The notes beneath the pieces were generated by a model. The model was not told where the DNA came from, ran no database searches, and was given only the letters and a program-made list of their open reading frames with translations. Of a stretch of 64,000 nucleotides of DNA, positions 6,141-63,790 are shown one piece after another. A program made the position numbers and the translations under genes. The stretch covers positions 478,258 through 542,257 of the forward strand of contig MNCI01000721.1 of assembly GCA_015680685.1 (NCBI GenBank), written 5' to 3'. Position 1 is the stretch's first letter, and the number at the start of each line of letters is the position of its first letter. The stretch comes from Gnetum montanum. Taxonomy: Eukaryota > Plantae > Gnetophyta.

Positions 6141-7062
6141 TGATAAACTACTTGTGTCAAAGGACTGTGATACGCTGTGATATCTTATCTATGATATCAT
6201 AGCCCCACTTACATCATCATAGATGTGATGTAGTGGGTCCTAGTCTCCACTATAAATACCAACCCACTATTTTGTCAAATGAACAACTTTGATCCAAAAA
6301 TTAGGAAAATTCTTGCAATTTGTTTCTATGAATTTACACTTAGCAATATAGTGAATGCCTGTAGTGTGGTGTTAAAGAGTTATACAAAATCTTTGGTTGA
6401 GTAAATTGTTCTTGGGCACAATTCATGGCCAAAAATAAAGATCAAGATTATTTTTCACCATTGCAGTATTCTACTTAGTTTACTTTACTTTTACTTTTAC
6501 CTAGTTCACATTTTACTTAGTATAATTTTTACACTTTATCATGTTTACTTTACCTAAGTTGTTTATAGTTTATATGTACTTTATTTTTCCAACATTCCTT
6601 AGTAATGCAATATAAGAATGACTAGTTTCGAGCATGTAGTATAATCGTTAGGTAACTAGTGGTGAGTTCACTTGATTTTCTTAGTGGTGGATTCACTTGG
6701 TAATTGTAGTGACAATTGCATAAGCCCAAGATGTGTATGATAAAATATTAATGGATAATTATTAATCATATGCTAGAATAGTCTTTTTACTCTCAAGACA
6801 CCCAGACTTAATTGTATTATCCCATTTCAACTATGTTTATAATTAGTCTTTGTTTGAGCCAACAACATCAACATATCATATGCCTTATCAAGAGTTAAAC
6901 TATACAACTTGAAGTTCACTAAGTCAACATGAGAAGATAATGATCATGAATTGAACATCAACTGCTCACATACTATACTATCCATCCATGGATTATGATT
7001 TGGTGACACATGAACACTTGTGACTTGCATGGTGGAGTGTTGGAATATACAACCACTTATCA
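6141..7062 (+). repeat. Element A 5' LTR
   Basis: Direct repeat of 19353-20230+50841-50880; TG...CA ends; ctataaata near 6250. Confidence 0.92.
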
Positions 7063-7063
7063 T

Positions 7064-7082
7064 TGGTGTCGTTGCCAAGGAT
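7064..7082 (+). promoter_or_regulatory. Primer binding site, Athila type (tggcgccgttgccgggga-like)
   Basis: tggtgtcgttgccaaggat immediately after the LTR-terminal CA. Confidence 0.8.
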
Positions 7083-22019: not shown

Positions 22020-25000
22020 TTAGATAAGAATGACTGACTGGATTGGTCAACTAATTTCCATCCATGTTGGCTATTCTAAATGCACCATTCCCATAGGCTC
22101 TAGTAATAAGGAAGGACCCTTCCCAATTAGCTAAGAATTTGTCCACATGCTCATGGACCACCTTGAGAAGCAAGTCACCTTCTTTGATCTCGCACATGGT
22201 CAAGTTATGATGATGTTCCTACTTCTGCCTCTCTTGATAGTATTTGATGTGAGTAGGCACTTGCATACATTGCTCCTCCACCAAGTCTAAGGCTACTATC
22301 CACAACTCCTTATTCTACTCATCGTTGATGAAGTTGGTCAAGGCTTTTCGGAGCAATGAAACCTACAACTCAAGAGGTAAAGCAACTTCCTAACCTAACC
22401 AAAATATCATGGTTCATACCAATTTTCATGTGATAGGTTGTTCTATATGCCCATAATGCATGCACAAGCTTCTCATGTCATTTATGCTTACTGTTGTCAA
22501 GCATCTTTTTAAGCAAGTTGATGATGGCTTTGCTACTAGCCTCTTGATGAGCTAGGCAAAATTTGGTGCTAGATACCTTTAAAATTTATTTTTCTTTTGT
22601 TGTATGACTAGCCCATGAGTCATATCTTGTGATGGAATGGTTTAAAAGTCAAAAGAAATCATCAAGACAATAAATAATTAGAATTGAATCTAAACAAGTT
22701 CCATACTTATGCGTGTCACTCATAAGTAAAATTATGAACCTTTATCCTAACTTCTAATCATAAGTTCAAGAATAAATATTCATAATTAAATCAAATTGAA
22801 GTCAAAGTTACAAGCATAGATGATGATGAGAATTAAAAGGGAGACTTCACCTAAATTGTGATTCTACCTTGTTGTCTGGACAATGTAGCAACCTCAACAG
22901 CCCATAAATGGATTCTAATTGTCTATAATTGGCACAAAGCTCAACAAATCCTCACATCATAATTTTTCAAGTGGAGACTAGACTTCAATTTCATGTGGGT
23001 TTGCTTGGGTATCAGTCCTGGTGCACACCTTGGGTACCTGTTGGATTCACTTGGGTTGTACAAAAGATGTTGCCCTCATATGCAAATTGAAGTCTTATTT
23101 ATACTTCAATTAAGTTAAAATTAAACATTTTAATAATATATGGATCACATTAATCTATCTAATTTAGTGGAAATGCCAAGTTTGGCATCCCAAATGTTGT
23201 GAACACCAATGGAAACAATTGAAAAGGCACCCTGAAATGTAATGGCAAGGAATAGCCCACTACTACCAACTATCCTTGTCATGTCCTATAGTTGCGATGG
23301 AATAGTAAAACCCTTGGCATGTCCTATAGTTGCTATTGCTATGCTTCTAGAATAGTCACCTACCATTGTCACACTTGTTATTTCTACTCTTATGGTCACT
23401 ACCATGCTTGCAATCACCATCACTGTGCACTATCGTTGCCTTGCTTGCCATCACCATCACTTATCATGCTCACCATCACCATTGCCTATGCCTTCTATTG
23501 TTGCTACTCTAGCTACTGATGTTGCTTTAACGTCACCATTGTTATCTGCTACCCTGGCCGCACCACTGCTACCGTCAAATCCTTGCTCCTATTGCTGATC
23601 CACCTTGTGCCACACACTCACCATCAACATTTCCCTGGAAAACCCTTCCTCATGTTACCGATGCAACAATCACTTCCTATTGACTACCACTGTCGTTGCC
23701 TCACATGTGCTGTCACTTACTATAGCCACACCGCACTGTTGTTGCTTTGATTCACCTACCTACAATAGTTAAACCCTCATTCATTTGCAAGAGTGAAACC
23801 CTTGTTCACCAGCAACAATGAAACCCTCACTTACTTACTGTCACCAGTGTCGCCGGTGCCACCAATGCCACCATGAGCATCACCAGTGCCGCAACACGCA
23901 AATGGGCTTGTTGCCCAATAATATTTATTATTTCTTTGATGATAATAACTTTAATATTTATATGAAATATTCAATAGTATTTATATTATAAGGTTTATTT
24001 ATATAATTTTTATAATATATAAACTATTTATATGTAATATAATAATTATAATCATATTGTAATATATAATATTTTTATATAGTTTTTATATATATAATTT
24101 TATAACTACAATGAATATAAATATTTATTTAGATAAGATAATATATCATGTTCTAATAATGTTTTTATAAAATAAATCAAATTAGTTAAGCTAAAATTAC
24201 AGTAAACTAAACTGTATCAATTTACTAATAATAATATACTAATAATAATGAATTAATAATAAGCTTAAAACTTAATCTTACTAAATTAATGTTAATTAAA
24301 TTTCAATAGTAATTAATTACATAAATCAATTAAAATGTATCCCTTTATTATAGGTACTTAGTTAAAAATTGATCCAATTTTGGGGTTTAACACCTCTACT
24401 TGTCCATTAGCTTGAGGGTAATAGGACAACAACAAAGAATGCTTAATGCCTAGGTTATGATAGAAATCTTTCATTTTATGACTACTAAATTATGGTCCAT
24501 TGCCTATAACTATGGTCATGGGTATGACAAAATGGACTATAATATCATCTAGAATGAATTTGTAGACTTGCTCGGATATACTCTTCCTTAGAGGAATAGT
24601 GTTAATCCACTTTGTAAAGTATTTGGTTATAGTGATGATGAAGCTATGCCTTGAGGAAGACTTAGGCATTATGGGGCCAATGAAATCCAAACCCCATTGC
24701 TGACATGACCATCTTATTTAAGTGGTATGCAACTCAGTCGATGAAACATGTATTGGCATGTGTTACACCGCTTCACCTTTTGTAGGTAGTCATTTTACAT
24801 ATGGGGCCTATAATAGCCTAACCATCTAATTTTAGCGGCCATGGCTCTAGGCCTTATATCTCCTCCACAAACACCCTCATGAACCTCCTCTAGGACTATT
24901 TTGGCTTTATTTTTACCTAAGCACTTTAGGAGTCTACCATCATAGGATCGTTGACATAGTGTGTTATCACCTACAATGACATACTGCTTTGATCACTTAC

Positions 25001-27272
25001 GTATAGTGTCCTTTTGAGAAGTAGTCAAGCCTTGCAAGGATTCACCATGCATAATGTAAATTTTGATATAATCATACCACTCCCTAGCAAGAGCAGTATG
25101 AACGAAGGCTACAAAGATATCCTTAGTGTTCTATGTGATAAGAATAGCACAATCCATGGTTCATGCGGGAAACTTACTAAACAGATCTAGTATCACACTA
25201 AGGGCTAACATTGATATTGCATCAGCTATGGTTTTTTCATTTCAAGGTATGTGTTGGATATCAATGTTTATGAATTATTGTAACAATTGCTTTCCTAGGT
25301 CATAGTAAGATTGTAAGTGCTTAGCTTTGCATGCATAGACTTCGGTCACTTGGTTAACCATGAGTTGTGAATCTCCTATGATCATTAAGTGTCTAATTCC
25401 TAGGTCACAAGCTACCATCATCCCTCTAATCAAACCTTCATACTTGGCTATGTTGTTGACACATGGGAACTCAAAACGATAAGTAGAGGGTCAAATTTAA
25501 CTACATGAGAATTTTATGATGGCAATGGCACTGGTCCCATGGGTAGTTAAAGCACCATCAAAGTGCATGATTGCCTCATAATTCTTAAGTACTTGGCTAA
25601 CTGCGTTAATGTATTCATTAGGGAATTCAAGATCTATGGTTGCTTGGTCATCGACAGGTGAAACTATGAGTTATACGGCTATAGCTTAAACTTTTATTGA
25701 GGATTGAGAGATGTAACATAGGTCAAATTCTATGGTTATGGCTTTCCATCAGGCTATATGGCTACTTTTGTAGATGTTGGTTGTTATGGATCTAATTATG
25801 TTATCTTTGCATATGACGTTGACTTGGCTTTTGAAGACATAGTATCTCCACTTCTTCAAGGAGAAGACTAGTGCTAGACAATACTTCTCTACTTCAATAT
25901 ATGAAGTCATGTGGGCTACTAACGTGTGGCTAAGGTAGTACACAAGCATTTCTACTCCATCATCATGCTTCTAATGGAGTAAAGAGGTAATGGATGTGTC
26001 GAAGATGGCAAGGTAAATGTAAAATGATTTACTCTCTTCTAGAGCATAAACTATCAGTAGTTGTGTCAACTCTTGCTTAAGGTTTTCAAAGGCCTCTTGG
26101 CATTGAGCCATTCACTCATGGCAAACTCTTTTCTTAAGAAAATGTTGCATGGGTTGTAACTTATCTATAAGCCTAGTGATGAACCTATGAATAAATTGCA
26201 ATTTGCCTTATAATCCTTGAAGCTCCTTAAAGTTGATAGTTGTTGCTAAATTAGATATGGCCTTAACCTTATTAGCATTAACACATATCCTTACTTTAGA
26301 GACTACAAAGCCAAGAATCTTACTAGTCTTCACTCTGAAGAAATACTTCTTAGGATTGAGCCTAAGCTTGTATTTGAGGCATCATTTAAGCATAAGGTCT
26401 AGGTCATTAGCATGGTCATTGGCCACTTTGAACTTAATGGCTATATCATCTATGTGATCATTAAGTAAACCTAGCATGTAATCACTGAATATTTAGGCCA
26501 TGGCTCATTAATAGGTTGCTCTAGCATTCTTAAGAACAAAGGGCATCATGGTATAACAAAAGGTACCCAAAGCGGTCATGAAGGCTATGCTAAGTTGATG
26601 CTCTGGGTTGATCCTAATCTAGTTATATCCTAAGAAATCCACCCATAAAGGACAACAAGGCATGTCTAGCCATAGTATTGATAAGTTGATCAATACTGGG
26701 CAAAGGAAAGTCATCCTTCATGATTACTTTATTTAGGTCTCAAAAATTGATGTAAATACGTATACTCCCATTTTTCTTAGGGACTACCATTATGTTAGAC
26801 ACCAATTCTGTGTAACCAATAGCCCTAATAAAACCATCTTGGTAGAGTTTAAGATCTCATCATGAACTACCAAGGCCAAATCAAGTCTAATTTTATGCAC
26901 TTTCTACTTAACTGGTCTAATGATAGGGTCTAGTATGATATTGTGCTGGACTAAACATAAGTCTAGGCCTAGCATATCTTCATATGACTAAGCAAAGACC
27001 TTAATGTTGCTTTGTAGGACCTTTGTGATGTCTTGAGCATATTGAGGTTCTAATCAGGAACTTAGTTTAAGGGTTTTCTCCCCAACACTGTGTGTTGTAA
27101 CAGGAACCTCAACTAGAGAGTCTTCAATTATGTCACCTACCTCTAAGTTAAGGGCTTTGACTAGGTTTTGAGGCCATTCTAAAGGATTGTCTATTGAGGT
27201 TATGTGTTCTATAAGACTCTTAGGCTTAAGATCTAGGCAATTAGGGTCAATACACATCACCGTGAGGTCCAT
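22020..27272 (-). pseudogene. Element B pol: RT ~27010-26050, RH ~26030-25600, archaeal-type RNase H ~25570-25190, INT ~24900-24393 + 22544-22020
   Basis: VFA*SYEDMLGLD; WCLT*W*SLRKM-type RT start, KDDFPL; YIEVEKYCLALVFSLKKWRYY; HFDGA, CVNNIAKYEGLI (aRH), IGDSQLMVNQV; MDFIGPI, YFTKWI, PQANGQVEA. Confidence 0.92.
22545..24392 (-). mobile_element. Solo LTR (1848 bp) of the element C family, inserted in B's integrase
   Basis: Perfect TSD CCTCT (22540-22544 / 24393-24397). Minus-strand ends TGTTAAACCCCAAAA...GCTCATCA are the same as C's LTRs. Splits the PQANGQVEA|SSK motif. Confidence 0.92.
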
Positions 27273-36253: not shown

Positions 36254-37559
36254 GCAACCTCCATCAACTTAGCTTATTTGGCTATCTATTTTTATTTTCA
36301 TGATGATGGCTATGATTAGCCAAGAATATGATATAGATGGTTGTTATTCTTTGATATTCTTGCCACAGATTATGACCATGGCTATTGTTAAACCCCAAAA
36401 ATTGGTTTAGTTTTTAATAGGTATTTTGTCAAAGACATACATTTTAATTGATTTTATATTGTTAATTAGTGTTTAATTAATGATTATTATATTTTAGTTT
36501 AGTGGTAAGTATTAGTTTATTATTATTTTATTATGATTAGTTAATTGGTGTGGTTTAGTTTATTTTAATTTTAGTTTAACTAGTACGATGTGTTATTATA
36601 TATTAATGAGATTATAATTACATGTATGCATTATATATTCATAAATATAACTTTACATATGTAAATATTATGTAATCATATATTATTATATGTGAATATG
36701 ATNCATGTTATATTATATATTATATATATTTTACATAAACTATATTATAAGATATTATACATTGTTATATTATTTATATATTATATGGCAACATGTCTAG
36801 CAGTGGTAGTGATAATGGCAATGGTGGATTCAAGTTTATAAAGGTCGCCAAGGGCTTGCAAATAGTGAATTCACTAACAATGCTAAAGGATTCCACTGTT
36901 GACCAACTCTACCATGCACTCTAAGCTCTCTGATGGGGCTTTATAATAGCAACAAGCGAATCCACCTTAGATGTGAAAACCCCATACTTCTTAGTTATGT
37001 CCAGATCATCAATACCAAGAGGCAGCTTCTGGCTAAATCCTTTGGTTACGCAGAGCTGCATCCAACAAGGGTGATCCAATGGCACCATGTGTTTCTATAA
37101 CAATATCAATGGAATCCCTACATGTGTGGATTACTACCTTCTCATAGTAACTGCAAGAAAAGAATAGGGCCAGCACAGCATGCAGCAATAGCAGCCAAGA
37201 TACAAAGCACGGCACATCTAGATTTTTGCAAGTAATGAGGGTTTGGCAATGGCAAATGTAGCAGTGCATGGTCAAAACAATGTCAGTGTCACATCTTTCA
37301 GCACATGCGTTACTTCACAGAGATCTTATAGTATTCTTCCTAGTAGTGAACTACAAGATTTGGGATGAATTCGACAACAAGATAGCAAAGAACCAACAAC
37401 AAATGTCTCAATCGCAAGGCTACACTTTTCTGTAGGCAATGTCTCTAAGTAGCAAGCCTACTTCTGTGACTAAAGAAGCAGTGCCAACCAAGGTTGAAGT
37501 TCAAGCAGAGTAATTCCTGGGGAGTGATATTGTGATGTCTGCCAAGCATCTGTCAAAGG

Positions 37560-37911
37560 TAGAAATTAAGAAATTAAGGGAAAAAGGACTCCCATATTCA
37601 AGATATTAGGGGATTTCACTAGCTAAGATCACTCATGAGGATGGTTCTCCATGGCCTTGGAATTATTTTATGTGGAGGGATACCTATACTCCAGATCTAA
37701 GCATAAACCTAAAGAAACATCATGTGCCTAGTACAATTCTAGAAAAAATCGCATATTGAATGGTCAAAGCACTGAGAGTACCAATCGACATGTTTTTCTG
37801 GAGAAGATATGGTTATAGAGTAATGATGTTAGAAACTGTCAAAGCCATGCCAGGAATGGTGGATGGAATGTTGTTGCACTACACTAAGGAGGTTTCAACA
37901 CAATGGATGGA
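37560..37911 (+). pseudogene. AOX: Alternative oxidase gene fragment in C's 5' LTR
   Basis: [81 protein letters not shown]. Confidence 0.92.
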
Positions 37912-40900
37912 TGTGATGGTGTAGAGACAAGCAGCATTGTAGCTAGTGGTGCAAGCATCTTGCATATTGACGTAGAAGCATGCAACATCGAAGGAGGTCA
38001 TTGGTGGTGGTGTTGTTGTTATTGCAAAGGAGAGTGAGGCAACGTAACAAATTCTAGGATTGTGTGGTGTAGCAAGGGTCTCTGACTTACAGCATGGAAA
38101 CCTTTCATGTCATTATAGCAAGGTCAAGCTTCAAAAGAATCTGAATTGAGCGTACAACATATTTGCACCTTCATGTGGTTCAACGTGTGATAAGGTATTC
38201 CACCGTTTCCGTCAAACTTCATACTAATCCAAGACATTAAAGATGCCCAACTTAGTAATTACACTAATTTAAATGAATTGGTTTCTCATTCTTTTGTATC
38301 CATCTATTATTAAAATAATTATTTTTAAACATTTTTAAAGTATAAATACTCCTTCAATTTTGTATCTTTTATGCAACCCAAGGTGTGAAACCCCAAAGCC
38401 ACCAAATGTAGTTTTTTGTGCATCTTTTGTATTAAGAAGTGCATCATTTTTGCACCTATCAAACACCAATTGGATTTTTTTTTCAGCATTTGTTTTGTAC
38501 AACTCGAGTGAATCCAACACACATCCAAAATGTGCACTAGGATTGATACCCAATCAAAAACCCTATCATATTGAAATCAGTTTTCTTTGAAGAATTGTAA
38601 TGTGAGGATTTGTTGAGCTTTGTGGCCACTAAAAACCATTAGAGTCCATTATCAGGTTGTTAAGGTTGCTACACTGTGGAAACAGCAAGGGAAAATCACA
38701 CATTAGGTAAAGTCTCCCTTGTAATCTTCATAATTTATGCATGTATTTATGATTTCAATATTGATTTAATCATTAATTTTCATTCTTGAACTTGTGATTA
38801 GAAGTTAGGGTGAAAATTTATGATTTTACTTATGAGTGATAATCATAAGTATGAAATTTAATTGGATTCAATCCTAATTATTTATTATCTTGATAATTTC
38901 TTTGACTTTTTAAACCATTCCTCTATGGGATATGACTTGCGAGTCAATCACAGACAAGGTGACATTCTCCTCAACGAAAGAAAAATAAATTTTAAAGGTA
39001 TCCAACACTGAATTTTGCATGGCTCATCAATTTGGTGCCATTGTCGAGGAGGCCGGCAAGGTTAATCATCATTAAGGGTTCAATATATTTTATTTTATTA
39101 AAATTTAATTGAATTTTCAAAAAAAAAGTATAAATTTTTTCCATTCCATTTCATTTTATTTTCGTTTGTGGTGTCCCTTAATTATTTTGTTTGTAATAAA
39201 AAATAATTTTTAAAAGGAAATTATAAATTTTAATTACATATTATATATAATTAAAGGAAAACCAATAATCTACAACTTTTACCTTGAAAAATGTAAAGGA
39301 CAATAGGAAATAATATTGTTAGTTGGGACTATAAAGAATTCGACAGCATCAAGTATAGAATGCAAGGGAGAAGGACAATTCTTCTTACCTTGAAATAGGT
39401 AGGTTTAAACCCAAAATCCAACTAAGGGTGAGCCTTAGACTAATAAGTGTCTTACACATAATAAATTTCATTGTTATAAAACAATCTTATTTAACCACAT
39501 TGTTCATAAGTCAAGGTAGCAACATAGCTTAGTTTAAGGTAATGCTTATTAGTGTTTGATTTTTATTAAATACTTACTTGGATGAGTCACTAAGGTGGAC
39601 AAGGTGTGTTATATTGAACCTCGTTTCTTCTGTAGTAAAAGGCATATATATATATTAAGCCATGTGAGCAACCCTTACAAAATGAAATTGGCTCCCACAA
39701 GAACCTCATGATTGAATTTCGCGAGAAAAAAGAAGAGAAAAAATGAATTCAAAAAAAACAAAAAAAAAGAAAGAAAAATAAGGAAAAAATAAACAAGGGA
39801 TAAAAGACAAGATAAAAAGTAAGAAATGAAAAAAAATGACAACACAAAAATCTTCAATTATGAGCTGAGCCCCACTCCAACAAGAACCTTATAGTTGGGG
39901 CGATGCTCCAAGTTCATAATTTCAAGCATCCCACAAGAACCTCATTACTGTTTAAGGGTTAGGCACCAATTATCAACCTACTCTCGATGCCTCTACCTTA
40001 GAACTAGGGTATAACATTGGCAGTGAAGAAGTCACTCATCCATAGTTAGTATGTTAATGGACATCTTCACTTCTAATCATTTCTTTTACTTTGTTATTTA
40101 GTTACTTTGCTTATGTTTCTTTGCACTTTTTAGACTATTATTTTTCTTTTCTTTTCTTTTGTACTTCTCATATTATTGTTTTCTTTTATTTTTACCTAAT
40201 TTTTTACCTTTTGCTATTTCTCTTTTCATTTTTGTTGAGTTATCATTCTAATTTCTCTTGCATGGTCATCCCTCTGACTAGTGGTACTTTTGTGCATAGG
40301 TTTTCTTTGTGTTTCCCATCATGTCTTCCATAGGCATCAATGGTCCAGATCCTTACTATGGTAGCCAATGATGGATACTAACAGTTGTTCACCCATTGCC
40401 TTTGGTTCTATCTTAGTCTAGATATATAAAATCTAGGGAAATTCTTGCTTTTGGTATATCCTTTGATCATGTTTCCTTTTAATAATTTATCTTTGCTAAT
40501 TAATGTAGGTATGTTTCATACCTTAGCTTAATTAGGGGGGGAGGATAACCAATTAATAAAGGATATGATAGTAGGGTATAACCAACTTGGAAGCTGAGCC
40601 AAAATCAAGTTAGAGAATGAATTAGATATAAGTAATGCATCTCAAATCCTTAAATCATAGGAAAGGTTTAAAACCTAAGTTTACAAGACATTTTTACACC
40701 TAACAAAGTAGACCTTGTGAGGTGACGTTAAGCCCAATAATCCTAGGTAGAACCTTCCTAACCAAGTTATATGTGAACTCATATCTAAGAATAAGAATTT
40801 ATCATCAAAAGAGGAATAAGCATATATACATATATACATATTTAATAAATAATTAGTAAATAAACATTTGGTTAATAAACAAGTCTAATTTTTGTTTTAT

Positions 40901-42376
40901 GTCTACATGTTTTTAATGTATTTAAATTTTGAATAACTAAAAGAATATTTTGGAATAAATAATAGTAGCATAATTTTTGTTTACCATTATGCATATATTA
41001 ATGTTTTTATAATTATTATTTTTATCACCTTTATAGCTAGGCATTGGCCATAGGCTAGTCAAGGGCTATGTTAAACCCCAAAAATTAGTTTAGTTTTTAA
41101 TAAATATTTTGTTAAAGACATACATTTTAATTGATTTTATATTGTTAATTAGTGTTTAATTAATGATTATTATATTTTAGTTTAGTGGTAAGTATTAGTT
41201 TATTATTATTTTATTATGATTAGTTAATTGATGTGGTTTAGTTTATTTTAATTGTAGTTTAACTAGTACGATGTATTATTATATATTAATGAGATTATAA
41301 TTACATATATACATTATATATTCATAAATATAACTTTACATATGTAAATATTATGTAATTATATATTATTATATGTGAATATATATTCCTAAATATTATA
41401 TATATCTTACCTCTATATATACATTATATATAAACTATATATTCATTACATATAAACATTATATAATAAAGATTATATATCTCATATAAATTATATAAAC
41501 ATTATAGATTATATTATATTATATAATATATATTTTAAATAAAATATATTATAATATATTAAACATTATTATATATATATATATATATAATATACGGTGG
41601 CATGTCCGACAATGGTAGCAACAATGACAATGGTGGATTCAAGTTTCTAAAGGTCACCAAGGGCTTGCACATAGTGAATTCACCGATAATGCCAGACGAT
41701 TCCGCTGCTAACCAACTCTACCATGCACACTGAGCTCTCTTAGGGCTCTATAATAGCAACAAGCAAATCCACCTTGGACGTGAAAAACCAGAACTTCTTG
41801 GTTATGTCCAGATCATCAATACTAAGAGTCATCTTCCAACTAAATCCTTTGGTTATGCAAAGCTGCGTTGAGCAAAGGTGATCCAATGGCATCATGTGTT
41901 TCCACAACAATATCAATGGAATCCTTACACGTGCGGATTCCTACCTTCTCACAGTAACTTCAAGAAAAGAATGGGGCTAGTGCAACATGCAGCAGCATAG
42001 CCAAGATACAGAGTGCAGCACATCTAGATTTTTGCAGCTAATGAGTGTTTGGGGATGGCGAGTGCAATAGCGCGTGGTCAAAGTATTGTCACGCCTTTTA
42101 GTGTGCACATTACTTCGTAGAGATTTTACAGTATTCTTCCTACAGCGAACTACAAGATTTGGAATGAATTCGGCAACGAGATAGCGAAGAACCAGCAATA
42201 GATGTATCAGTCGCAAGCCTACACTTTTCTGCAGGTGATGTCTCTGAGTTGCAGGCCTGCTTCTATGACTGAAGAAGTAGTGTCGGCTAAGGCTAAAGTT
42301 CAAGTGGAGCAGTTTTGGGGGAGTGATCTTGTGATGTCTGCCAAGCATCCATTGCTGACAAAGATTGAGAAATTGA

Positions 42377-42676
42377 GGAATTGCATCAACTAAAATCACT
42401 CGCGAGGATGGTTCTCCATGGCCTTGGAATTGTTTTATGCGAAGGGATACCTATACTCTAGATCTAAGCATCGACTTGAAGAAACATCGTGTGCCCAGTA
42501 CAGTTCTGGACAAAATTGCATATTGGATGGTCAAAGTGCTAGGAGTACCAGTCGACATGTTTTTCTAGAGAAGATATGGTTACAGAGTAATGATGTTAGA
42601 AACAATGGCAACTGTGCCAGGAATGGTGGGTGGAATGTTGTTGCACTACAAATCACTGAGGAGGTTTCAACACAGT
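42377..42676 (+). pseudogene. AOX: Alternative oxidase gene fragment in C's 3' LTR
   Basis: Single frame: [99 protein letters not shown]. Confidence 0.95.
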
Positions 42677-43994
42677 TGACAGGCATGATGGCGTAGAGAC
42701 AAGCAGCATTGCAGCTAGTGGTGCAAGCATCCTGTAGATTGACATAGAAGCATGCAATGTTGGAGGAGGTCGTTTGTGGTGTTGTTGTTGTTGTTGCAAA
42801 GGAGAGTGAGGCGATGTAACAAATTCTGGGATTGTGTGATGTAGCAGGGATCTTTTACTTACGACGTGGCAACCTTACATGCCATTACAACAAGGTCAAG
42901 CTTCAAAAGAATTTGAATCAAGCATACAACATACTTGCACCTTCATGTGGTTCAACATGTGATAAGGTCTTCCCCCATTTCTATCAAACTTCATACTAAT
43001 CCAAGACATTAAAAATGCCCAACTTAGTAATTACACTAATTTAAATGAATTGGTATCTCATTCTTCTGTATCCATCTATTATTAAAATAATTATTTTTAA
43101 ACATTGTTAGAGTATAAATACTCTTTTAACTTTGTATCTTTTGTGTAACCCAGGGTGTGAAACCACAGGGACACCAAATGCATTTTTTTATGCATCTTTT
43201 GTATTGAGGAGTGCATCATTTGTGCACCCATTAGACATTGATTGCGCAAATGTTTTTTAGCATTTGTTTTGTACAACTCGAGTGAATCTAACACGCACCC
43301 AATGTGTGCACTAAGATTGATACCCAATCAAAAACCATATCATATTGAAATTAGTTTTCTTTGAAGAATTGTAATGTGAGGATTTGTTGAGCTTTGTAAC
43401 CACTAAAGACCATTAGAGTCCATTGTCAGGCTATTGAGGTTGCTGCACTGTGGAAATAGCAAGGTAGAATCACAAATTAGGGAAGTCTCCATTGTAATCT
43501 TCATAATTTGTGCATGTATTTATTATTTCAATATTGATTTAATCATTAATTTTCATTCTTGAACTTGTAATTAGAAGTTAGGGTGAAATTTTATGATTTT
43601 ACTTATGAGTGATAGTCATAAGTATGGAATTTAATTAGTTTTGATTCTAATTATTTATTTTCTTGATGATTTCTTTAACTTTTTCAACCGTTCCTCCATG
43701 GGATACAACTCATGAGTCAATCATAGATGAGGTGACAATCTCCACAATGAAAGAAAAATAAATTTTAAAGGTATCCAGCACCGTATTTTGGCTGGCTTGT
43801 CAACTATGTATGTTATGGACATTTTAACTTTAAATTTAAATTTTGGTTTTATTTTTTGGCTATATGTATCCGTAGTTGTAGTAAACATTGTGAACGTTGA
43901 GAATGGCTATGTTGACATTTTGGTTATAACATTAAATAGTTAATTGATGCAATAATAGGCTAAGAAAAAAGAGAGAGATAATAATAAAAGGGAT

Positions 43995-44879: not shown

Positions 44880-47330
44880 ACTTTATGTTTACATTGTTGA
44901 TAGCCAAGGGAACCGCGTTATCACCATGCATAATGATTTCACCTCCCTCACAAGGAACATGAATTTCTTGATGGATGGGAGAGGGCACAGCTCCTAATTG
45001 ATCCAACCAAGGCCTTCTCAAGATAAGGTTGAATCCTAATGTCTCTTGCACCACCAGGAAATTAGCCATTGTGAGGAATTGCTCTCTTACTACAAAATTC
45101 AAGGAGATACACCCCTTGATAACAACTCTTGATCCATTGAAGGATTTGAAAGCTACAATTAATGTAGGTTGTATTTACTTAGTTAAGCCCAAGCATTCGA
45201 TGATGGTGCATGAGACAACATTGGTTGTGGCTCCGTCATCAACATGCATCCGATGTACTTTAAACTATCCTATATGTATGGTTAGGAATAGAGGGGTTGT
45301 AGTTGCTTCATCATTTTGGGGATTAACGTTAATTTCACTATCATGAAATGTTAAGGATGTTGACTTCTTCTACAATGGTGAGAGAAGAATCATCACTACA
45401 TGGATGCCTTCCTCATTAGTGAGGATGTCCTCACTAACAGGGATGGAAGTCAACATTTTGACTAGCACCTCAAGATGTGTGATAGAAGTCATAATAAGGT
45501 CATACAAGCTTAAGGTTGTGTTTTTTTTTTTTTTTCTTCAGGGATTGCCTAACTTGGTCCATCGTATTGAGGAAGTTTTTATCCTTGGTTGTCGACTTGT
45601 CACCTAGTTATGCTTTACTTCCTTTGTGTGCCTTGAAATGTGAACTTTAGCTTTAGGTTATGGATGTTGAGGCTCTTTCTTGTTGTTTTGATTATGGGCT
45701 TTTTGGTCCTCTTGTGGCTTGTTGGTTGAAGAAGTTGGAGTAGAGGAGGTCATGGGTATAGCTAAAATGGAAGTGGGCTTTGGTGGCCCCACTTCCTTTC
45801 GTGCCTCTATCTACTTATCACCCTTGTTGTCAGGCATTTACTTATACTTCTTCCTTTGTTTGGCTGAAGTTTTTTGGTTGTCAGCCATTAGTTATGAGGA
45901 AGAGCCAATAACATTAACTACCACAGGGGGTTGTTGTGTAGTTGTTTGGGCTATGGCTACTTAGGTTGTGTTGGGTTGGGATATCCTAATCACAAAAGAT
46001 TTCTTGGGAGGCACTCGTGATGGTACTCTTATAACAAGGGGGGATCTAGAGCTATTAGAAGCTGAAGAAGCCCTTTCACCAAAGAGGGGTACTTGAATCA
46101 TGAATGATTCCCTTGTAGGTCATTGATCGTCATCAATGTTGAATGTTGAAATAACATAAGGACTATCATTAACATTCAATGGGTCTTTTTAGACCTACAT
46201 CAACTAGCTTTGTGGTCGAACTAGGTTGGAAGCATCTAAGACCAGCTCCTCCCTATCTATCATCCTTTGCATGTCATATTTCAGTGCAAGGTAGAAGTTT
46301 GTGTCATAACTAGGCAATTGATGATAATCGCAAAAGCAGTCTAGTTTGAAGTATCTAGGCAATTGAGGATCATCCATTGTTGGCGAGGTGGAATCTTTGG
46401 CTATTTCGCATAATTGCTTGTGTTTGTTTTTCAAGAAGCTTTGATCATTTATTTATGTTACATGTGTCCACTTTTTAATAGTTGGTCTAGTAACTCGGAT
46501 GGTTTCATAGGTAAGGTAGTGTATTTGGACATGTCCTTTCTTTCGAAGTTAGGTCTAGTTGTTGTTGATGTAGTAGACTGAAAGGTTGATGGTTGGTTAT
46601 TGTAGTCATTAATAGGAGCCTTGGGTGGATTGGCCTTCAACCCCTAGTTTGTAGTCTTTATTACTTTTGTCACAATTGCTACGGTCATGTTGTTTTTTTT
46701 GCTCTTTTCTTTATTTCTCTATGCATGTTGATTCTTGTATACTACATAGGCTAGATCATGGCTAGCCTCCATAGCATCTTATATGTTCTTGGTTTACGAG
46801 AACACTTGGCTAACAAACAACAGATCAAGGTAGTAGAGCTTGGACTTAATAAAGTCACACACTACCCCCTTGAATATGGCTAAAAGATGGGCTTTGACTA
46901 TGGGCTATGATATTTTTTTAAGTAGTGCATTCCATCATTGTATGAACTTTTGTATAGGTTCTAAGGGCCCCTACTTGACCTTCATTAGTGAATCAAGCGT
47001 AGTGTCAAGCTTGAAGCTATACTTGAAGCGATTGACAAACTAGGCAACTAAGTCCTCTAGAGAGGATATGGAACCTCTAGATAATGCGTGGTACCAATCA
47101 AGTGCTTTCTAATCAAAGACATAAGGAAAATCCTCAGGATGACATGAGGTCATGGTTGCAAGAGTAAGCATTTAGATTGAAAGGTGATAAGGTGAGCATT
47201 AGGATCACCTTCTCCATTATATTTGCTAAATTGGAAAATAGGGACACCAAGAGAAAGTGTTAAGGATGGAACTACAAGGCTTATGGGATCTTCTTGATAA
47301 AAATCCATAATCTTGATAATCTATGAGGTA
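44880..47330 (-). pseudogene. Element B gag (~47330-46150) and aspartic protease (~45360-44880), degenerate
   Basis: KYNGEGDPNAHL; CFCDYHQLPSYDTNFYLALK (Ogre/Tat Zn-knuckle-like); VDDGATTNV; FNLILRRPWLDQLGAVPSPIHQ. Confidence 0.9.
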
Positions 47331-48574
47331 GAGGCTTTAAGCCTCTTCAACTCTTCCGTTAGGTCCTGGATCATTTGGAAGGCTTAATCCAAGCCCTGTG
47401 GTGGCCTTGTTGGTTGTGGGGTTTGTACATAGGGTAGTGGTATTTGTTGTGAGGCTTGTTGGCCTTGCTAAGGATTGCATGACAAAAGGAAGAGGTTGCA
47501 TTATGGTTGTGGCTTGTGGGCCAAACAAAGAAAAGGATGTTTGTGCTAGTACTTGAGGCACAAATGGAACAAATGGGGTGTGTGACCCTTGAGTTGCTTG
47601 GGGTCCCATGGTGGATTCCACACGAGTAGTTAATGGATTTGTGGTGGTAAAAACCACCGTTGATGGCTACACAGATTAAGGTCATGTGGAAAATGACATA
47701 GATGGGTTATGGATCATAGTTTGTGGCAATGATTGAGTTTAATGTGTGGCTATGACCAATGTCAAGTCAACTATAGAAGATGGCAACACCATGCCCATGG
47801 AGAAAACAAAGGCATGAGGGGAAGGCTTGGTGGCCTTGGGGGTTTCCTGTTAGAATAATTTTCCTAGGATGTTTTTAGGCTCAAATTCTACCCTAAATTC
47901 ATCCTCCTCTTCCCGTTGTTCCTCAGAGCTATTTTTTCATCCTCTTCCTCCATCTAAATCAATTGGTTTAGTATACCCGCATAGATATTAAATAGAGGTA
48001 TTTGGTCATTGGAGAAAGGATGTACTCCTTACCATTATGGTGGATAAGTTCAAACTCCCTTTTTGGCTTCTGCTTCAAAACATGGAATTAGCATGCTAGC
48101 CTGTATTTTGGCACAAATGAAGTTATATTGATCTTCATTTATGACTGTAAAATCAAGACTTTTCCCTCTAACCCGCAAAGATTGCCTACATTCAATGACA
48201 ATAGGGTCTTTAGGGTCATATGCCCTCATGGCTTGTTAGCTAGGACCTTCTCCAATGAAGGTGAAGGGCAACTTGGTAAATTATTGAAAAGACATGGCTA
48301 TGGTGTTGAGAATGGCTTAAAATAAGGCTATAAATGATAAAATAGAAGTAAATTCTAGTGAATGAAATTCAAAAGCATTTAAAGGAAACAAAAATGATTG
48401 AAAAATAAGTACTTACTATAATTAGTAAGTGGAGGATAAGAGGGGTTTACCCCTTTACCAAAAATGGAAAGTTCAAAACATTGGTGTCAAGTCTTACCCA
48501 AGTTGGCCTTCCAACTACCTCTATGCTGGGTANACACCTTCTAGCTAAACATTGGGGAGAGAAGACTAAAAATT

Positions 48575-48975
48575 AAAGTGGAAAGTTGGATTTTTCCACT
48601 AAAACTTGGTTTTGGCAAGCTGCCAATTTTCTCAACATGGAAAAATGGGGGGAAGCTAACTTTCAAAAGTTTGGTAATTTCCACAAGGGTTGCACCAACA
48701 ACTTTAGAAGTTAAAAAAGATTTAAATTGGCAACAAAAAGAAAAGGGAAAATGCTTCAATGCTAGCCTTACAAGAAAAAATTGAAAGAAACTAACTATAA
48801 TTTCCACACTAAGCTTTGATTACAGGGGGGTATGGGTTGAAAACCAAAGTGGAAAACTAGTGTTTTCCACTAAGATTTGGTTTTGGTAGGCTACCAATTT
48901 TCTCAACTTGGAAAAATGGGGGAAAGCTAACTTCTAGAAGTTTGGTAATTTTCAAAAGTGTTGCACCATCAATGT
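48575..48975. repeat. Two copies of a ~125-bp block, ~270 bp apart, in B's 5' UTR
   Basis: aaagtggaaa...ttttccactaa...ccaattttctcaac.tggaaaaatggggg...ttgcacca at 48575 and 48846. Confidence 0.8.
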
Positions 48976-61299: not shown

Positions 61300-62008
61300 N
61301 NNNNNNNNNNNNNNNNNNNNNNNNNNNNNNNNNNNNNNNNNNNNNNNNNNNNNNNNNNNNNNNNNNNNNNNNNNNNNNNNNNNNNNNNNNNNNNNNNNNN
61401 NNNNNNNNNNNNNNNNNNNNNNNNNNNNNNNNNNNNNNNNNNNNNNNNNNNNNNNNNNNNNNNNNNNNNNNNNNNNNNNNNNNNNNNNNNNNNNNNNNNN
61501 NNNNNNNNNNNNNNNNNNNNNNNNNNNNNNNNNNNNNNNNNNNNNNNNNNNNNNNNNNNNNNNNNNNNNNNNNNNNNNNNNNNNNNNNNNNNNNNNNNNN
61601 NNNNNNNNNNNNNNNNNNNNNNNNNNNNNNNNNNNNNNNNNNNNNNNNNNNNNNNNNNNNNNNNNNNNNNNNNNNNNNNNNNNNNNNNNNNNNNNNNNNN
61701 NNNNNNNNNNNNNNNNNNNNNNNNNNNNNNNNNNNNNNNNNNNNNNNNNNNNNNNNNNNNNNNNNNNNNNNNNNNNNNNNNNNNNNNNNNNNNNNNNNNN
61801 NNNNNNNNNNNNNNNNNNNNNNNNNNNNNNNNNNNNNNNNNNNNNNNNNNNNNNNNNNNNNNNNNNNNNNNNNNNNNNNNNNNNNNNNNNNNNNNNNNNN
61901 NNNNNNNNNNNNNNNNNNNNNNNNNNNNNNNNNNNNNNNNNNNNNNNNNNNNNNNNNNNNNNNNNNNNNNNNNNNNNNNNNNNNNNNNNNNNNNNNNNNN
62001 NNNNNNNN
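61300..62008. other. Assembly gap (N run)
   Basis: Run of n. Confidence 1.
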
Positions 62009-63308: not shown

Positions 63309-63790
63309 NNNNNNNNNNNNNNNNNNNNNNNNNNNNNNNNNNNNNNNNNNNNNNNNNNNNNNNNNNNNNNNNNNNNNNNNNNNNNNNNNNNNNNNNNNNN
63401 NNNNNNNNNNNNNNNNNNNNNNNNNNNNNNNNNNNNNNNNNNNNNNNNNNNNNNNNNNNNNNNNNNNNNNNNNNNNNNNNNNNNNNNNNNNNNNNNNNNN
63501 NNNNNNNNNNNNNNNNNNNNNNNNNNNNNNNNNNNNNNNNNNNNNNNNNNNNNNNNNNNNNNNNNNNNNNNNNNNNNNNNNNNNNNNNNNNNNNNNNNNN
63601 NNNNNNNNNNNNNNNNNNNNNNNNNNNNNNNNNNNNNNNNNNNNNNNNNNNNNNNNNNNNNNNNNNNNNNNNNNNNNNNNNNNNNNNNNNNNNNNNNNNN
63701 NNNNNNNNNNNNNNNNNNNNNNNNNNNNNNNNNNNNNNNNNNNNNNNNNNNNNNNNNNNNNNNNNNNNNNNNNNNNNNNNNNNNNNNNNN
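63309..63790. other. Assembly gap (N run)
   Basis: Run of n. Confidence 1.

Follow-up and report, generated by a model that had tools for sequence, protein, structure and literature searches.

An intron-free alternative oxidase fragment in both long terminal repeats of a decayed non-autonomous retrotransposon of Gnetum montanum

Introduction

Long terminal repeat (LTR) retrotransposons are well known to capture pieces of host genes; besides Bs1, examples from rice, sorghum and maize number in the hundreds (PMC13317346, PMC3726574), and a 2026 survey of 23 vascular plants including Welwitschia found gene capture to be widespread and examined cross-talk in gymnosperms (PMC13477047). Template switching is an accepted route by which foreign sequence enters LTR elements (PMC13317346), and cross-talk with the donor gene through small interfering RNAs (siRNAs) from captured fragments is an established model (10.1101/777037; capture by transposable elements is also treated in PMC13317346 and PMC13477047). 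Here we describe a 64,000-nucleotide stretch of the genome of Gnetum montanum (contig MNCI01000721.1, positions 478,258 to 542,257 of the forward strand; hereafter the window, in which all positions are counted from its first letter). It contains a decayed, non-autonomous LTR element with a fragment of an alternative oxidase (AOX) gene in each of its two LTRs.

Several described systems share part of this arrangement. Like maize Bs1 and further plant LTR elements that transduce genes, the Gnetum element is non-autonomous and carries a truncated, dead piece of a host gene that appears to have passed through RNA (PMC13317346, PMC3726574). The captured domains of Bs1, however, lie within the element body and not in the LTRs (PMC13317346), whereas the AOX piece sits in U3 and is present in two copies per element; set against the gene-transducing elements more broadly, one host gene is identified here. 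BARE-2, with Wis-2 sequence in its LTR, and the long Veju terminal-repeat retrotransposon in miniature (TRIM) are LTR chimeras that arose through aberrant template switching, in which foreign sequence acquired during reverse transcription came to be inherited by a subfamily (PMC13317346). Their donors are other retrotransposons or unknown DNA, in contrast to the donor here, which would be the spliced nuclear mRNA for a mitochondrial enzyme. Processed pseudogenes made by long interspersed nuclear elements (LINEs) are likewise intron-free copies of host mRNAs, but the Gnetum piece is without poly(A) or 3' end, keeps its 5' part and occupies the same place in two LTRs.

Large retrotransposon derivatives (LARDs) have long LTRs, a non-coding internal domain and a primer-binding site (PBS), and they need an autonomous partner. 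The Gnetum element resembles them in its LTRs of 2.6-2.7 kb, its non-coding core and its PBS, and the window also contains a Tat-lineage relative whose LTR is related to its own. Host-gene cargo, such as the AOX piece here, is no part of the definition of classical LARDs. Engineered 'double-copy' retroviral vectors place an insert in the 3' U3, from where reverse transcription duplicates it to both LTRs. Those vectors are man-made, while the arrangement described here is natural and non-functional. In text searches of the literature we found no description of host-mRNA pieces in U3 as such.

Taken alone, the locus is one more dead retrotransposon-borne gene fragment, and such capture is common in gymnosperm genomes. 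It is nevertheless a clean, well-delimited case in which the cargo lies in U3 and is hence doubled at each transposition, and it gains modest further value from a sister LTR in the same window that holds other sequence at the same place.

A truncated AOX coding sequence in two LTRs

The AOX sequence falls into the following segments, one in each of two direct repeats that we call LTR A and LTR B, together with a probable upstream extension in A.

37553..37911, + strand: AOX fragment in LTR A, comprising the end of exon 1, the whole of exon 2 and the first ~40 codons of exon 3 (tblastn, Pfam)
42352..42676, + strand: AOX fragment in LTR B (tblastn, Pfam)
37268..37552, + strand: probable N-terminal AOX coding remnant, proposed from frame openness and not from similarity

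A preliminary description, made from the letters alone, had recognized about 100 codons of AOX in sense orientation in each of two LTRs, and similarity searches bear out both the presence of AOX and its location and orientation. In LTR A, residues 102-210 of a Welwitschia AOX (P0122) align to 37553-37879 with 68% identity, and residues 211-221 align to 37875-37907, past a 5-bp deletion near 37880. In LTR B, residues 121-220 of the same protein align to 42377-42676 with 75% identity. E-values for the AOX pieces range from 1e-44 to 1e-46 (tblastn), and the similarity overall spans approximately residues 102-223 of the Welwitschia protein at 68-75% identity. The exon-3 pieces of both copies match the Pfam AOX family (PF01786) with 25.2 and 38.3 bits, where the curated cut-off is 22.7, and cover only positions 27-84 of the 216 in the profile. 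A full-library HMMER search with a 63-aa piece of B returned 121 proteins at E<=0.001, the top one being Welwitschia mirabilis AOX with 70% identity. Chance similarity to AOX is thus excluded by the E-values and by Pfam scores above threshold. Throughout, the AOX pieces were searched apart, with no joined spliced model; X replaced the stops and the frame break in the tree alignment, and breaks were read as X within scripts only.

The fragment ends within exon 3. We found no tblastn similarity in either copy beyond ...RRFQHSG(G)W, and the later iron-ligand motifs NERMHL, LEEEA and RADEAH are absent, which agrees with the end at RRFQHS reported earlier. Stops interrupt the piece in LTR A at 37607 and 37757. 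In LTR B a stop at 42566 replaces the Q of FFQ, and a 32-bp deletion at 42376/42377 shifts the upstream part to another frame. Judged from its sequence, the AOX piece is dead, is without all iron ligands and has no predicted protein function.

The earlier figure of about 100 codons per LTR is probably too low: similarity in copy A starts at 37553, and AOX sequence there probably begins before that position. Upstream of the piece, the AOX frame contains 2 stops in 95-97 codons compared to 5-8 in the other frames, and this is true of both copies. An ATG at 37268 stands 107 codons ahead of the EKG motif, and the corresponding distance in Welwitschia P0122 is 113. This region suggests that the whole coding part of exon 1 may have been captured; ahead of 37553, low-stringency tblastn and blastx searches against N-terminal AOX sequence found no match above chance level.

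Intron-free junctions and a probable RNA origin

The last three exons of plant AOX genes are conserved in size, at 129, 489 and 57 bp (PMC4980395). In the captured piece the interval PWETY..FFQ spans exactly 43 codons, or 129 bp, and the sites CFM/PWETY and FFQ/RRYG are therefore the boundaries of exon 2. The tblastn alignments run ungapped across the first site (37672/37673 in A, 42439/42440 in B) and across the second (37801/37802 in A, 42568/42569 in B).

Relatives have introns at both sites. Many short open reading frames (ORFs) in the protein library, derived from genomic contigs, consist of exon 2 alone with non-AOX flanks (e.g. P0046, P0048, P0053); P0046 contains 43 residues identical to Pinaceae AOX exon 2 and ends ...FFQ/VRI. 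Several gene models run from FFQ into non-AOX sequence, and two Welwitschia transcript isoforms, P0001 and P0122, diverge one residue past FFQ. The preliminary description had held that typical AOX genes carry introns at these two junctions and that both copies lack them. The first point is supported by the 129-bp exon 2, the exon-2-only ORFs and the Welwitschia isoforms, and the second by the ungapped alignments. Because the piece is intron-free while relatives carry introns there, an RNA origin is the best reading of the sequence, although it is not proven.

The shape of the fragment adds to this picture. In sense orientation, the piece keeps the 5' part of the mRNA and is missing the 3' end, stopping at about codon 223 in exon 3 with no A-run after it, and no flanking duplication of its own is visible around the AOX block. 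This shape favours copying by reverse transcriptase (RT) in the 3' to 5' direction along an mRNA and not a LINE-type retrocopy. We rejected a LINE-type processed pseudogene on the same grounds, the lack of an mRNA 3' end or poly(A) and of an own flanking duplication. The earlier proposal of spliced-mRNA capture by RT template switching therefore stands as far as the intron-free piece is concerned; the template switching itself is a step that we infer.

A non-autonomous element with LARD-type architecture

The two AOX pieces lie within a unit of approximately 7.4 kb with the following parts.

36381..36385, no strand: left target-site duplication GCTAT, directly before the 5' LTR
36386..39029, + strand: 5' LTR (copy A), 2644 bp, TGTTAAACCCC...GCTCATCA, with the same termini as a third LTR, C (below)
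38341..38348, + strand: TATAAATA of LTR A, putative LTR promoter, kept in A, B and C
39030..41068, + strand: internal core, 2039 bp, AT-rich and non-coding, with low-complexity open stretches of <=91 aa only
39033..39049, + strand: primer-binding-site motif TGGTGCCATTGTCGAGG, 3 nt past the end of LTR A
41069..43802, + strand: 3' LTR (copy B), 2734 bp (repeat search, self-BLAST)
43113..43120, + strand: TATAAATA of LTR B (LTR comparison)
43803..43807, no strand: right target-site duplication ACTAT, directly after the 3' LTR

A direct-repeat search and self-BLAST of the window delimit two direct repeats on the + strand, A at 36386-39029 and B at 41069-43802. The span of 37230-42676 given previously is too short for these repeats. 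Depending on the method, A runs from 36380/36386 to 39029/39030 and B from 41064/41069 to 43802/43803, and neither search found a further full-length copy within the window. Across 2600 aligned nt, the two repeats have 86.6% identity. Both open with TGTTAAACCCC and close with ...TCA, giving TG..CA ends, and the start reads TGTTAAACC. The target-site duplication, GCTAT versus ACTAT, matches at 4/5 positions with a G/A transition as the sole mismatch; it is inexact, and plausible at 13% LTR divergence. LTR B contains 118 bp of extra AT-rich, (TATA)-like sequence in its 5' domain relative to LTR A (41383-41500), and this AT-rich tip is self-similar internally (41305-41488 versus 41415-41594).

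The PBS lies on the expected side of LTR A, and none is found downstream of LTR B. Motifs of the TGGTGCCATTGTCGAGG type occur twice after LTR ends (39033 and 7064-7080), compared to 0.02 expected from shuffles. The motif appears to match the complementary sequence of the plant tRNA-Asp 3' end, apart from four transitions; no tRNA gene was found in the window. At the second site, 7055-7080 on the + strand, an LTR-end/PBS junction of the same PBS type reads ...CTTATCA T TGGTGTCGTTGCCAAGG, which would place the end of a further gypsy-type element's 5' LTR at ~7061. The purine run before LTR B is a short AAGGG, and a clearer polypurine tract precedes LTR C.

Between the LTRs, the core at 39030-41068 has no ORF of note, no domains and no gag or pol, and nothing similar to it was found elsewhere in the window, including the pol-bearing relative described below. 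The unit 36386-43802 (+) can be read as a 5' LTR, non-coding core and 3' LTR, a non-autonomous LARD-type element, with the short purine run and the inexact target duplication as the weak points of this reading. The two repeats had been taken from the outset as LTRs of one non-autonomous element, an assignment now backed by the third LTR next to pol, the PBS and the ORF-less core. A simple tandem duplication was rejected, as the repeats begin and stop at LTR ends and the flanks after A and B differ.

The AOX piece lies ~430 bp upstream of TATAAATA, on the sense strand and inside a segment that varies within the LTR family, and a location in the U3 of both LTRs would be a reasonable assignment. 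The same placement, upstream of the LTR TATA at 38341 and 43113, had been put forward before as probable, and the TATAAATA motif is conserved in the third LTR. Since the position and breakpoints of the AOX piece are identical in both LTRs, it would already have been in the template before insertion, in keeping with the earlier claim that capture preceded the insertion of this copy.

A third LTR and a variable U3 segment

The window holds a relative of the element on the opposite strand, and its comparison with A and B delimits the segment that contains AOX.

22545..24392, - strand: third LTR (C) of the same family, without AOX, 3' LTR of a Tat-lineage element, with termini as in A and B
24493..25970, - strand: decayed pol remnants of an autonomous-type relative (Pfam: RT_RNaseH, RVT_3, weak rve)
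36786..38297, + strand: family-variable U3 segment ('cargo slot'), ~1.5 kb, present in A and B, with other sequence in C (A/B versus C comparison)

LTR C lies directly downstream, on its own strand, of remnants of RT_RNaseH, RVT_3 and rve. The Pfam matches on the minus strand are RT_RNaseH at 25970-25752, RVT_3 at 25490-25278 and a weak integrase core at 24717-24493. Because these pol remnants stand directly upstream of it on its strand, C is the 3' LTR of a pol-bearing Ty3/gypsy element, and because an LTR with the same ends adjoins pol remnants, A and B are true LTRs of a real family. A second RNase H domain (RVT_3) marks the Tat lineage, and the domain content points to a place for the A/B family in the Tat lineage of Ty3/gypsy. 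No 5' partner LTR for C was found within the window. The weak rve remnant is truncated and lies ~100 bp from LTR C; the C-terminal part of the integrase is apparently deleted.

LTR C shares only three blocks with A and B, 36386-36785, 38298-38360 and 38493-39029, at 69-81% identity. In LTR terms these are the first 400 bp, which are AT-rich, the stretch around the TATA box, and the final ~540 bp; A, B and C have their ends, TATA region and R/U5 in common. In place of the intervening A/B segment, LTR C carries ~840 bp of unrelated low-complexity sequence (23982-23145, minus strand), and one LTR family thus shows two different fillings of the same slot within the window, that of A/B and that of C. 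The slot of LTR C is G-rich and made of GGTGATGG/GCAAGCA-like motifs, with no recognisable gene fragment, and brief stretches of comparable motifs occur on either side of the AOX block in both A and B (~36790-36850 and ~37915-38030). Pfam recognised nothing in 19 six-frame pieces from the C slot and from the remainder of the A/B slot (36786-37260 and 37915-38297), and a 93-aa antisense stretch reached ESM Atlas scores of <=0.77 only. In LTR B, a 157-codon stretch is open antisense to the AOX N-terminal region (41980-42450, minus strand); it is not kept open in A, has no Pfam match and probably arose by chance on the strand facing what was once coding sequence.

It is possible, though in our view less likely than not, that a fixed U3 slot in Tat/Athila-type LTR families of this genome repeatedly takes up pieces of spliced host mRNAs. 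With the slot situated between the promoter and the constant AT-rich tip, this habit would be the retrotransposon equivalent of Pack-MULEs. If the pattern were frequent in the genome, RT template switching would seem to favour one site within these LTRs, host exons could be amplified to high copy number, and small-RNA cross-talk with genes such as AOX might follow.

Parentage of the AOX piece

A maximum-likelihood tree of 128 columns pairs A with B (100/96) and groups the pair with Welwitschia AOX (94/86), within a clade of gymnosperm AOX and some angiosperm sequences; this placement by itself makes a gnetophyte host probable. The stem branch of A+B is long, at 0.45 changes per column. A motif, EKGL.YSRYWG, is common to the A/B piece and the AOX of Welwitschia, Pinus, Picea and Araucaria. 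Over 90 ungapped residues, the copies compare with the Welwitschia protein as follows.

Copy A: 63/90 residues match the Welwitschia protein
Copy B: 66/90 residues match the Welwitschia protein
At least one copy: 72/90 residues match the Welwitschia protein
A and B identical to each other but differing from the Welwitschia protein: 12/90 residues

Several of the differences shared by A and B need transversions. The 12/90 shared differences mean that the direct parent was a different AOX gene or the gene of a different species, or else that the piece resided in the element for a long time ahead of this insertion. It probably derives directly from a different AOX gene or from another gnetophyte's orthologue. 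A search with the Welwitschia AOX brought up no closer gnetophyte protein. The 63-aa piece, used in a word search, hit one unrelated exon ORF from Camellia and nothing from this genome.

Decay of the LTRs

LTRs A and B differ by a Kimura two-parameter (K2P) distance of 0.151, with 276 transitions and 72 transversions (transversions 2.8%). Their identity ranges from 96.5% in the 5' domain, which has 18% G+C, to ~82% in the middle, which has 40% G+C. Transitions between A and B hit 67% of CG, 56% of CHG and 20% of CHH cytosines, a strong footprint of decay that would be mostly C-to-T change at methylated CG and CHG sites. The unevenness of A/B identity is accounted for by this process, as cytosine decay follows G+C and CG/CHG content.

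Such C-to-T decay causes an LTR clock based on total divergence to overestimate age and makes it unreliable in this genome. Substitution rates are 1.3e-8 per site per year in grasses and 2.2e-9 in conifers, and K/2r at these rates gives roughly 6 to 34 million years, both figures being upper limits. We conclude that the element is old and dead.

The AOX segment and its neighbour are the most diverged parts of the LTRs (K2P 0.218 and 0.205), and only 5 of ~310-340 24-mers are common to both AOX pieces. Because of this divergence and the few shared 24-mers, siRNA cross-talk from this copy would be weak and is unlikely today. Any siRNAs of relevance would have to come from younger members of the family, should these exist.

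Origin of the element and alternative explanations

We consider it likely that the locus is an old, dead LARD-type element of the Tat family whose ancestor took spliced AOX mRNA into its U3. Before this copy inserted, the ancestor would have gained ~360 to 650 bp of spliced AOX mRNA. The piece begins within exon 1 or near its start, takes in exon 2 and reaches into the first ~40 codons of exon 3; it lies in sense, between the promoter and the constant AT-rich tip of the LTR. Two RT template switches during minus-strand synthesis, from U3 to a co-packaged AOX mRNA and back, would be the most likely route. Reverse transcription would then have copied U3 to both ends, placing the AOX piece in both LTRs, and after insertion both LTRs would have decayed while the AOX piece gained stops and indels.

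Several points weigh against this account. The introns of the parental AOX of this genome are assumed from relatives, among which no direct evidence of intron 1 was found for a gnetophyte. The 12/90 differences shared by A and B indicate another parent gene or species, or a long life in the element before insertion. Three others concern the element itself: an LTR identity of 86.6% is low for a single insertion, the polypurine tract ahead of LTR B is weak, and the target duplication, at 4/5, is inexact.

The long A+B stem (0.45 per column) and the 12/90 shared differences would also allow a decayed intermediate, in which capture occurred at the DNA level or in two steps: a processed AOX copy, be it a retrogene or a retropseudogene, or cDNA used as filler in break repair, entered an LTR and was then retrotransposed. 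The end product would be the same, an intron-free piece in both U3s. We regard this as unlikely, since there is no poly(A), mRNA 3' end or duplication around the AOX block, a fragment that is truncated at the 3' end and retains the 5' part is atypical of a LINE-type retrocopy, and from an insert in one genomic LTR, progeny would inherit only what is located in the 3' LTR's U3.

The three doubts about the element, together with an identity that varies along the LTR from 96.5% to 82%, could instead mean that A and B are not the LTRs of one insertion and were brought together by unequal recombination or local rearrangement, in which case their divergence would not date an insertion. We find this improbable. 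The unevenness tracks G+C and CG/CHG decay, the PBS stands on the correct side of A with none after B, and a 4/5 match with one transition is expected at this age. The sequence after B is unrelated to that after A, leaving no simple tandem duplication, and the AOX piece would be LTR-borne in either case.

Selection of the piece as functional cargo, a regulatory or decoy sequence that for example yields siRNAs damping host AOX or shielding the element, would fit the epigenetic-conflict model known for captured fragments in maize (10.1101/777037) and the doubling of the AOX piece in every element copy, but is highly improbable given that the AOX part and its neighbour are the most diverged in the LTR, that so few 24-mers are common to both copies and that stops and indels are present. 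Capture of spliced AOX mRNA into the U3 of an ancestral Tat-family element remains our preferred explanation of the locus.

Other features of the window

Pfam recognised neither the putative protease nor the putative gag sequence on the minus strand at 44881-48819, and a location of the AOX-bearing element between the protease and RT of one host element, in a giant spacer, is therefore not confirmed. Single N positions occur at 36703, inside LTR A, and at 48533, and longer N runs occupy 61300-62008 (709) and 63309-63790 (482), a pattern that looks like that of a gap-filled short-read scaffold.

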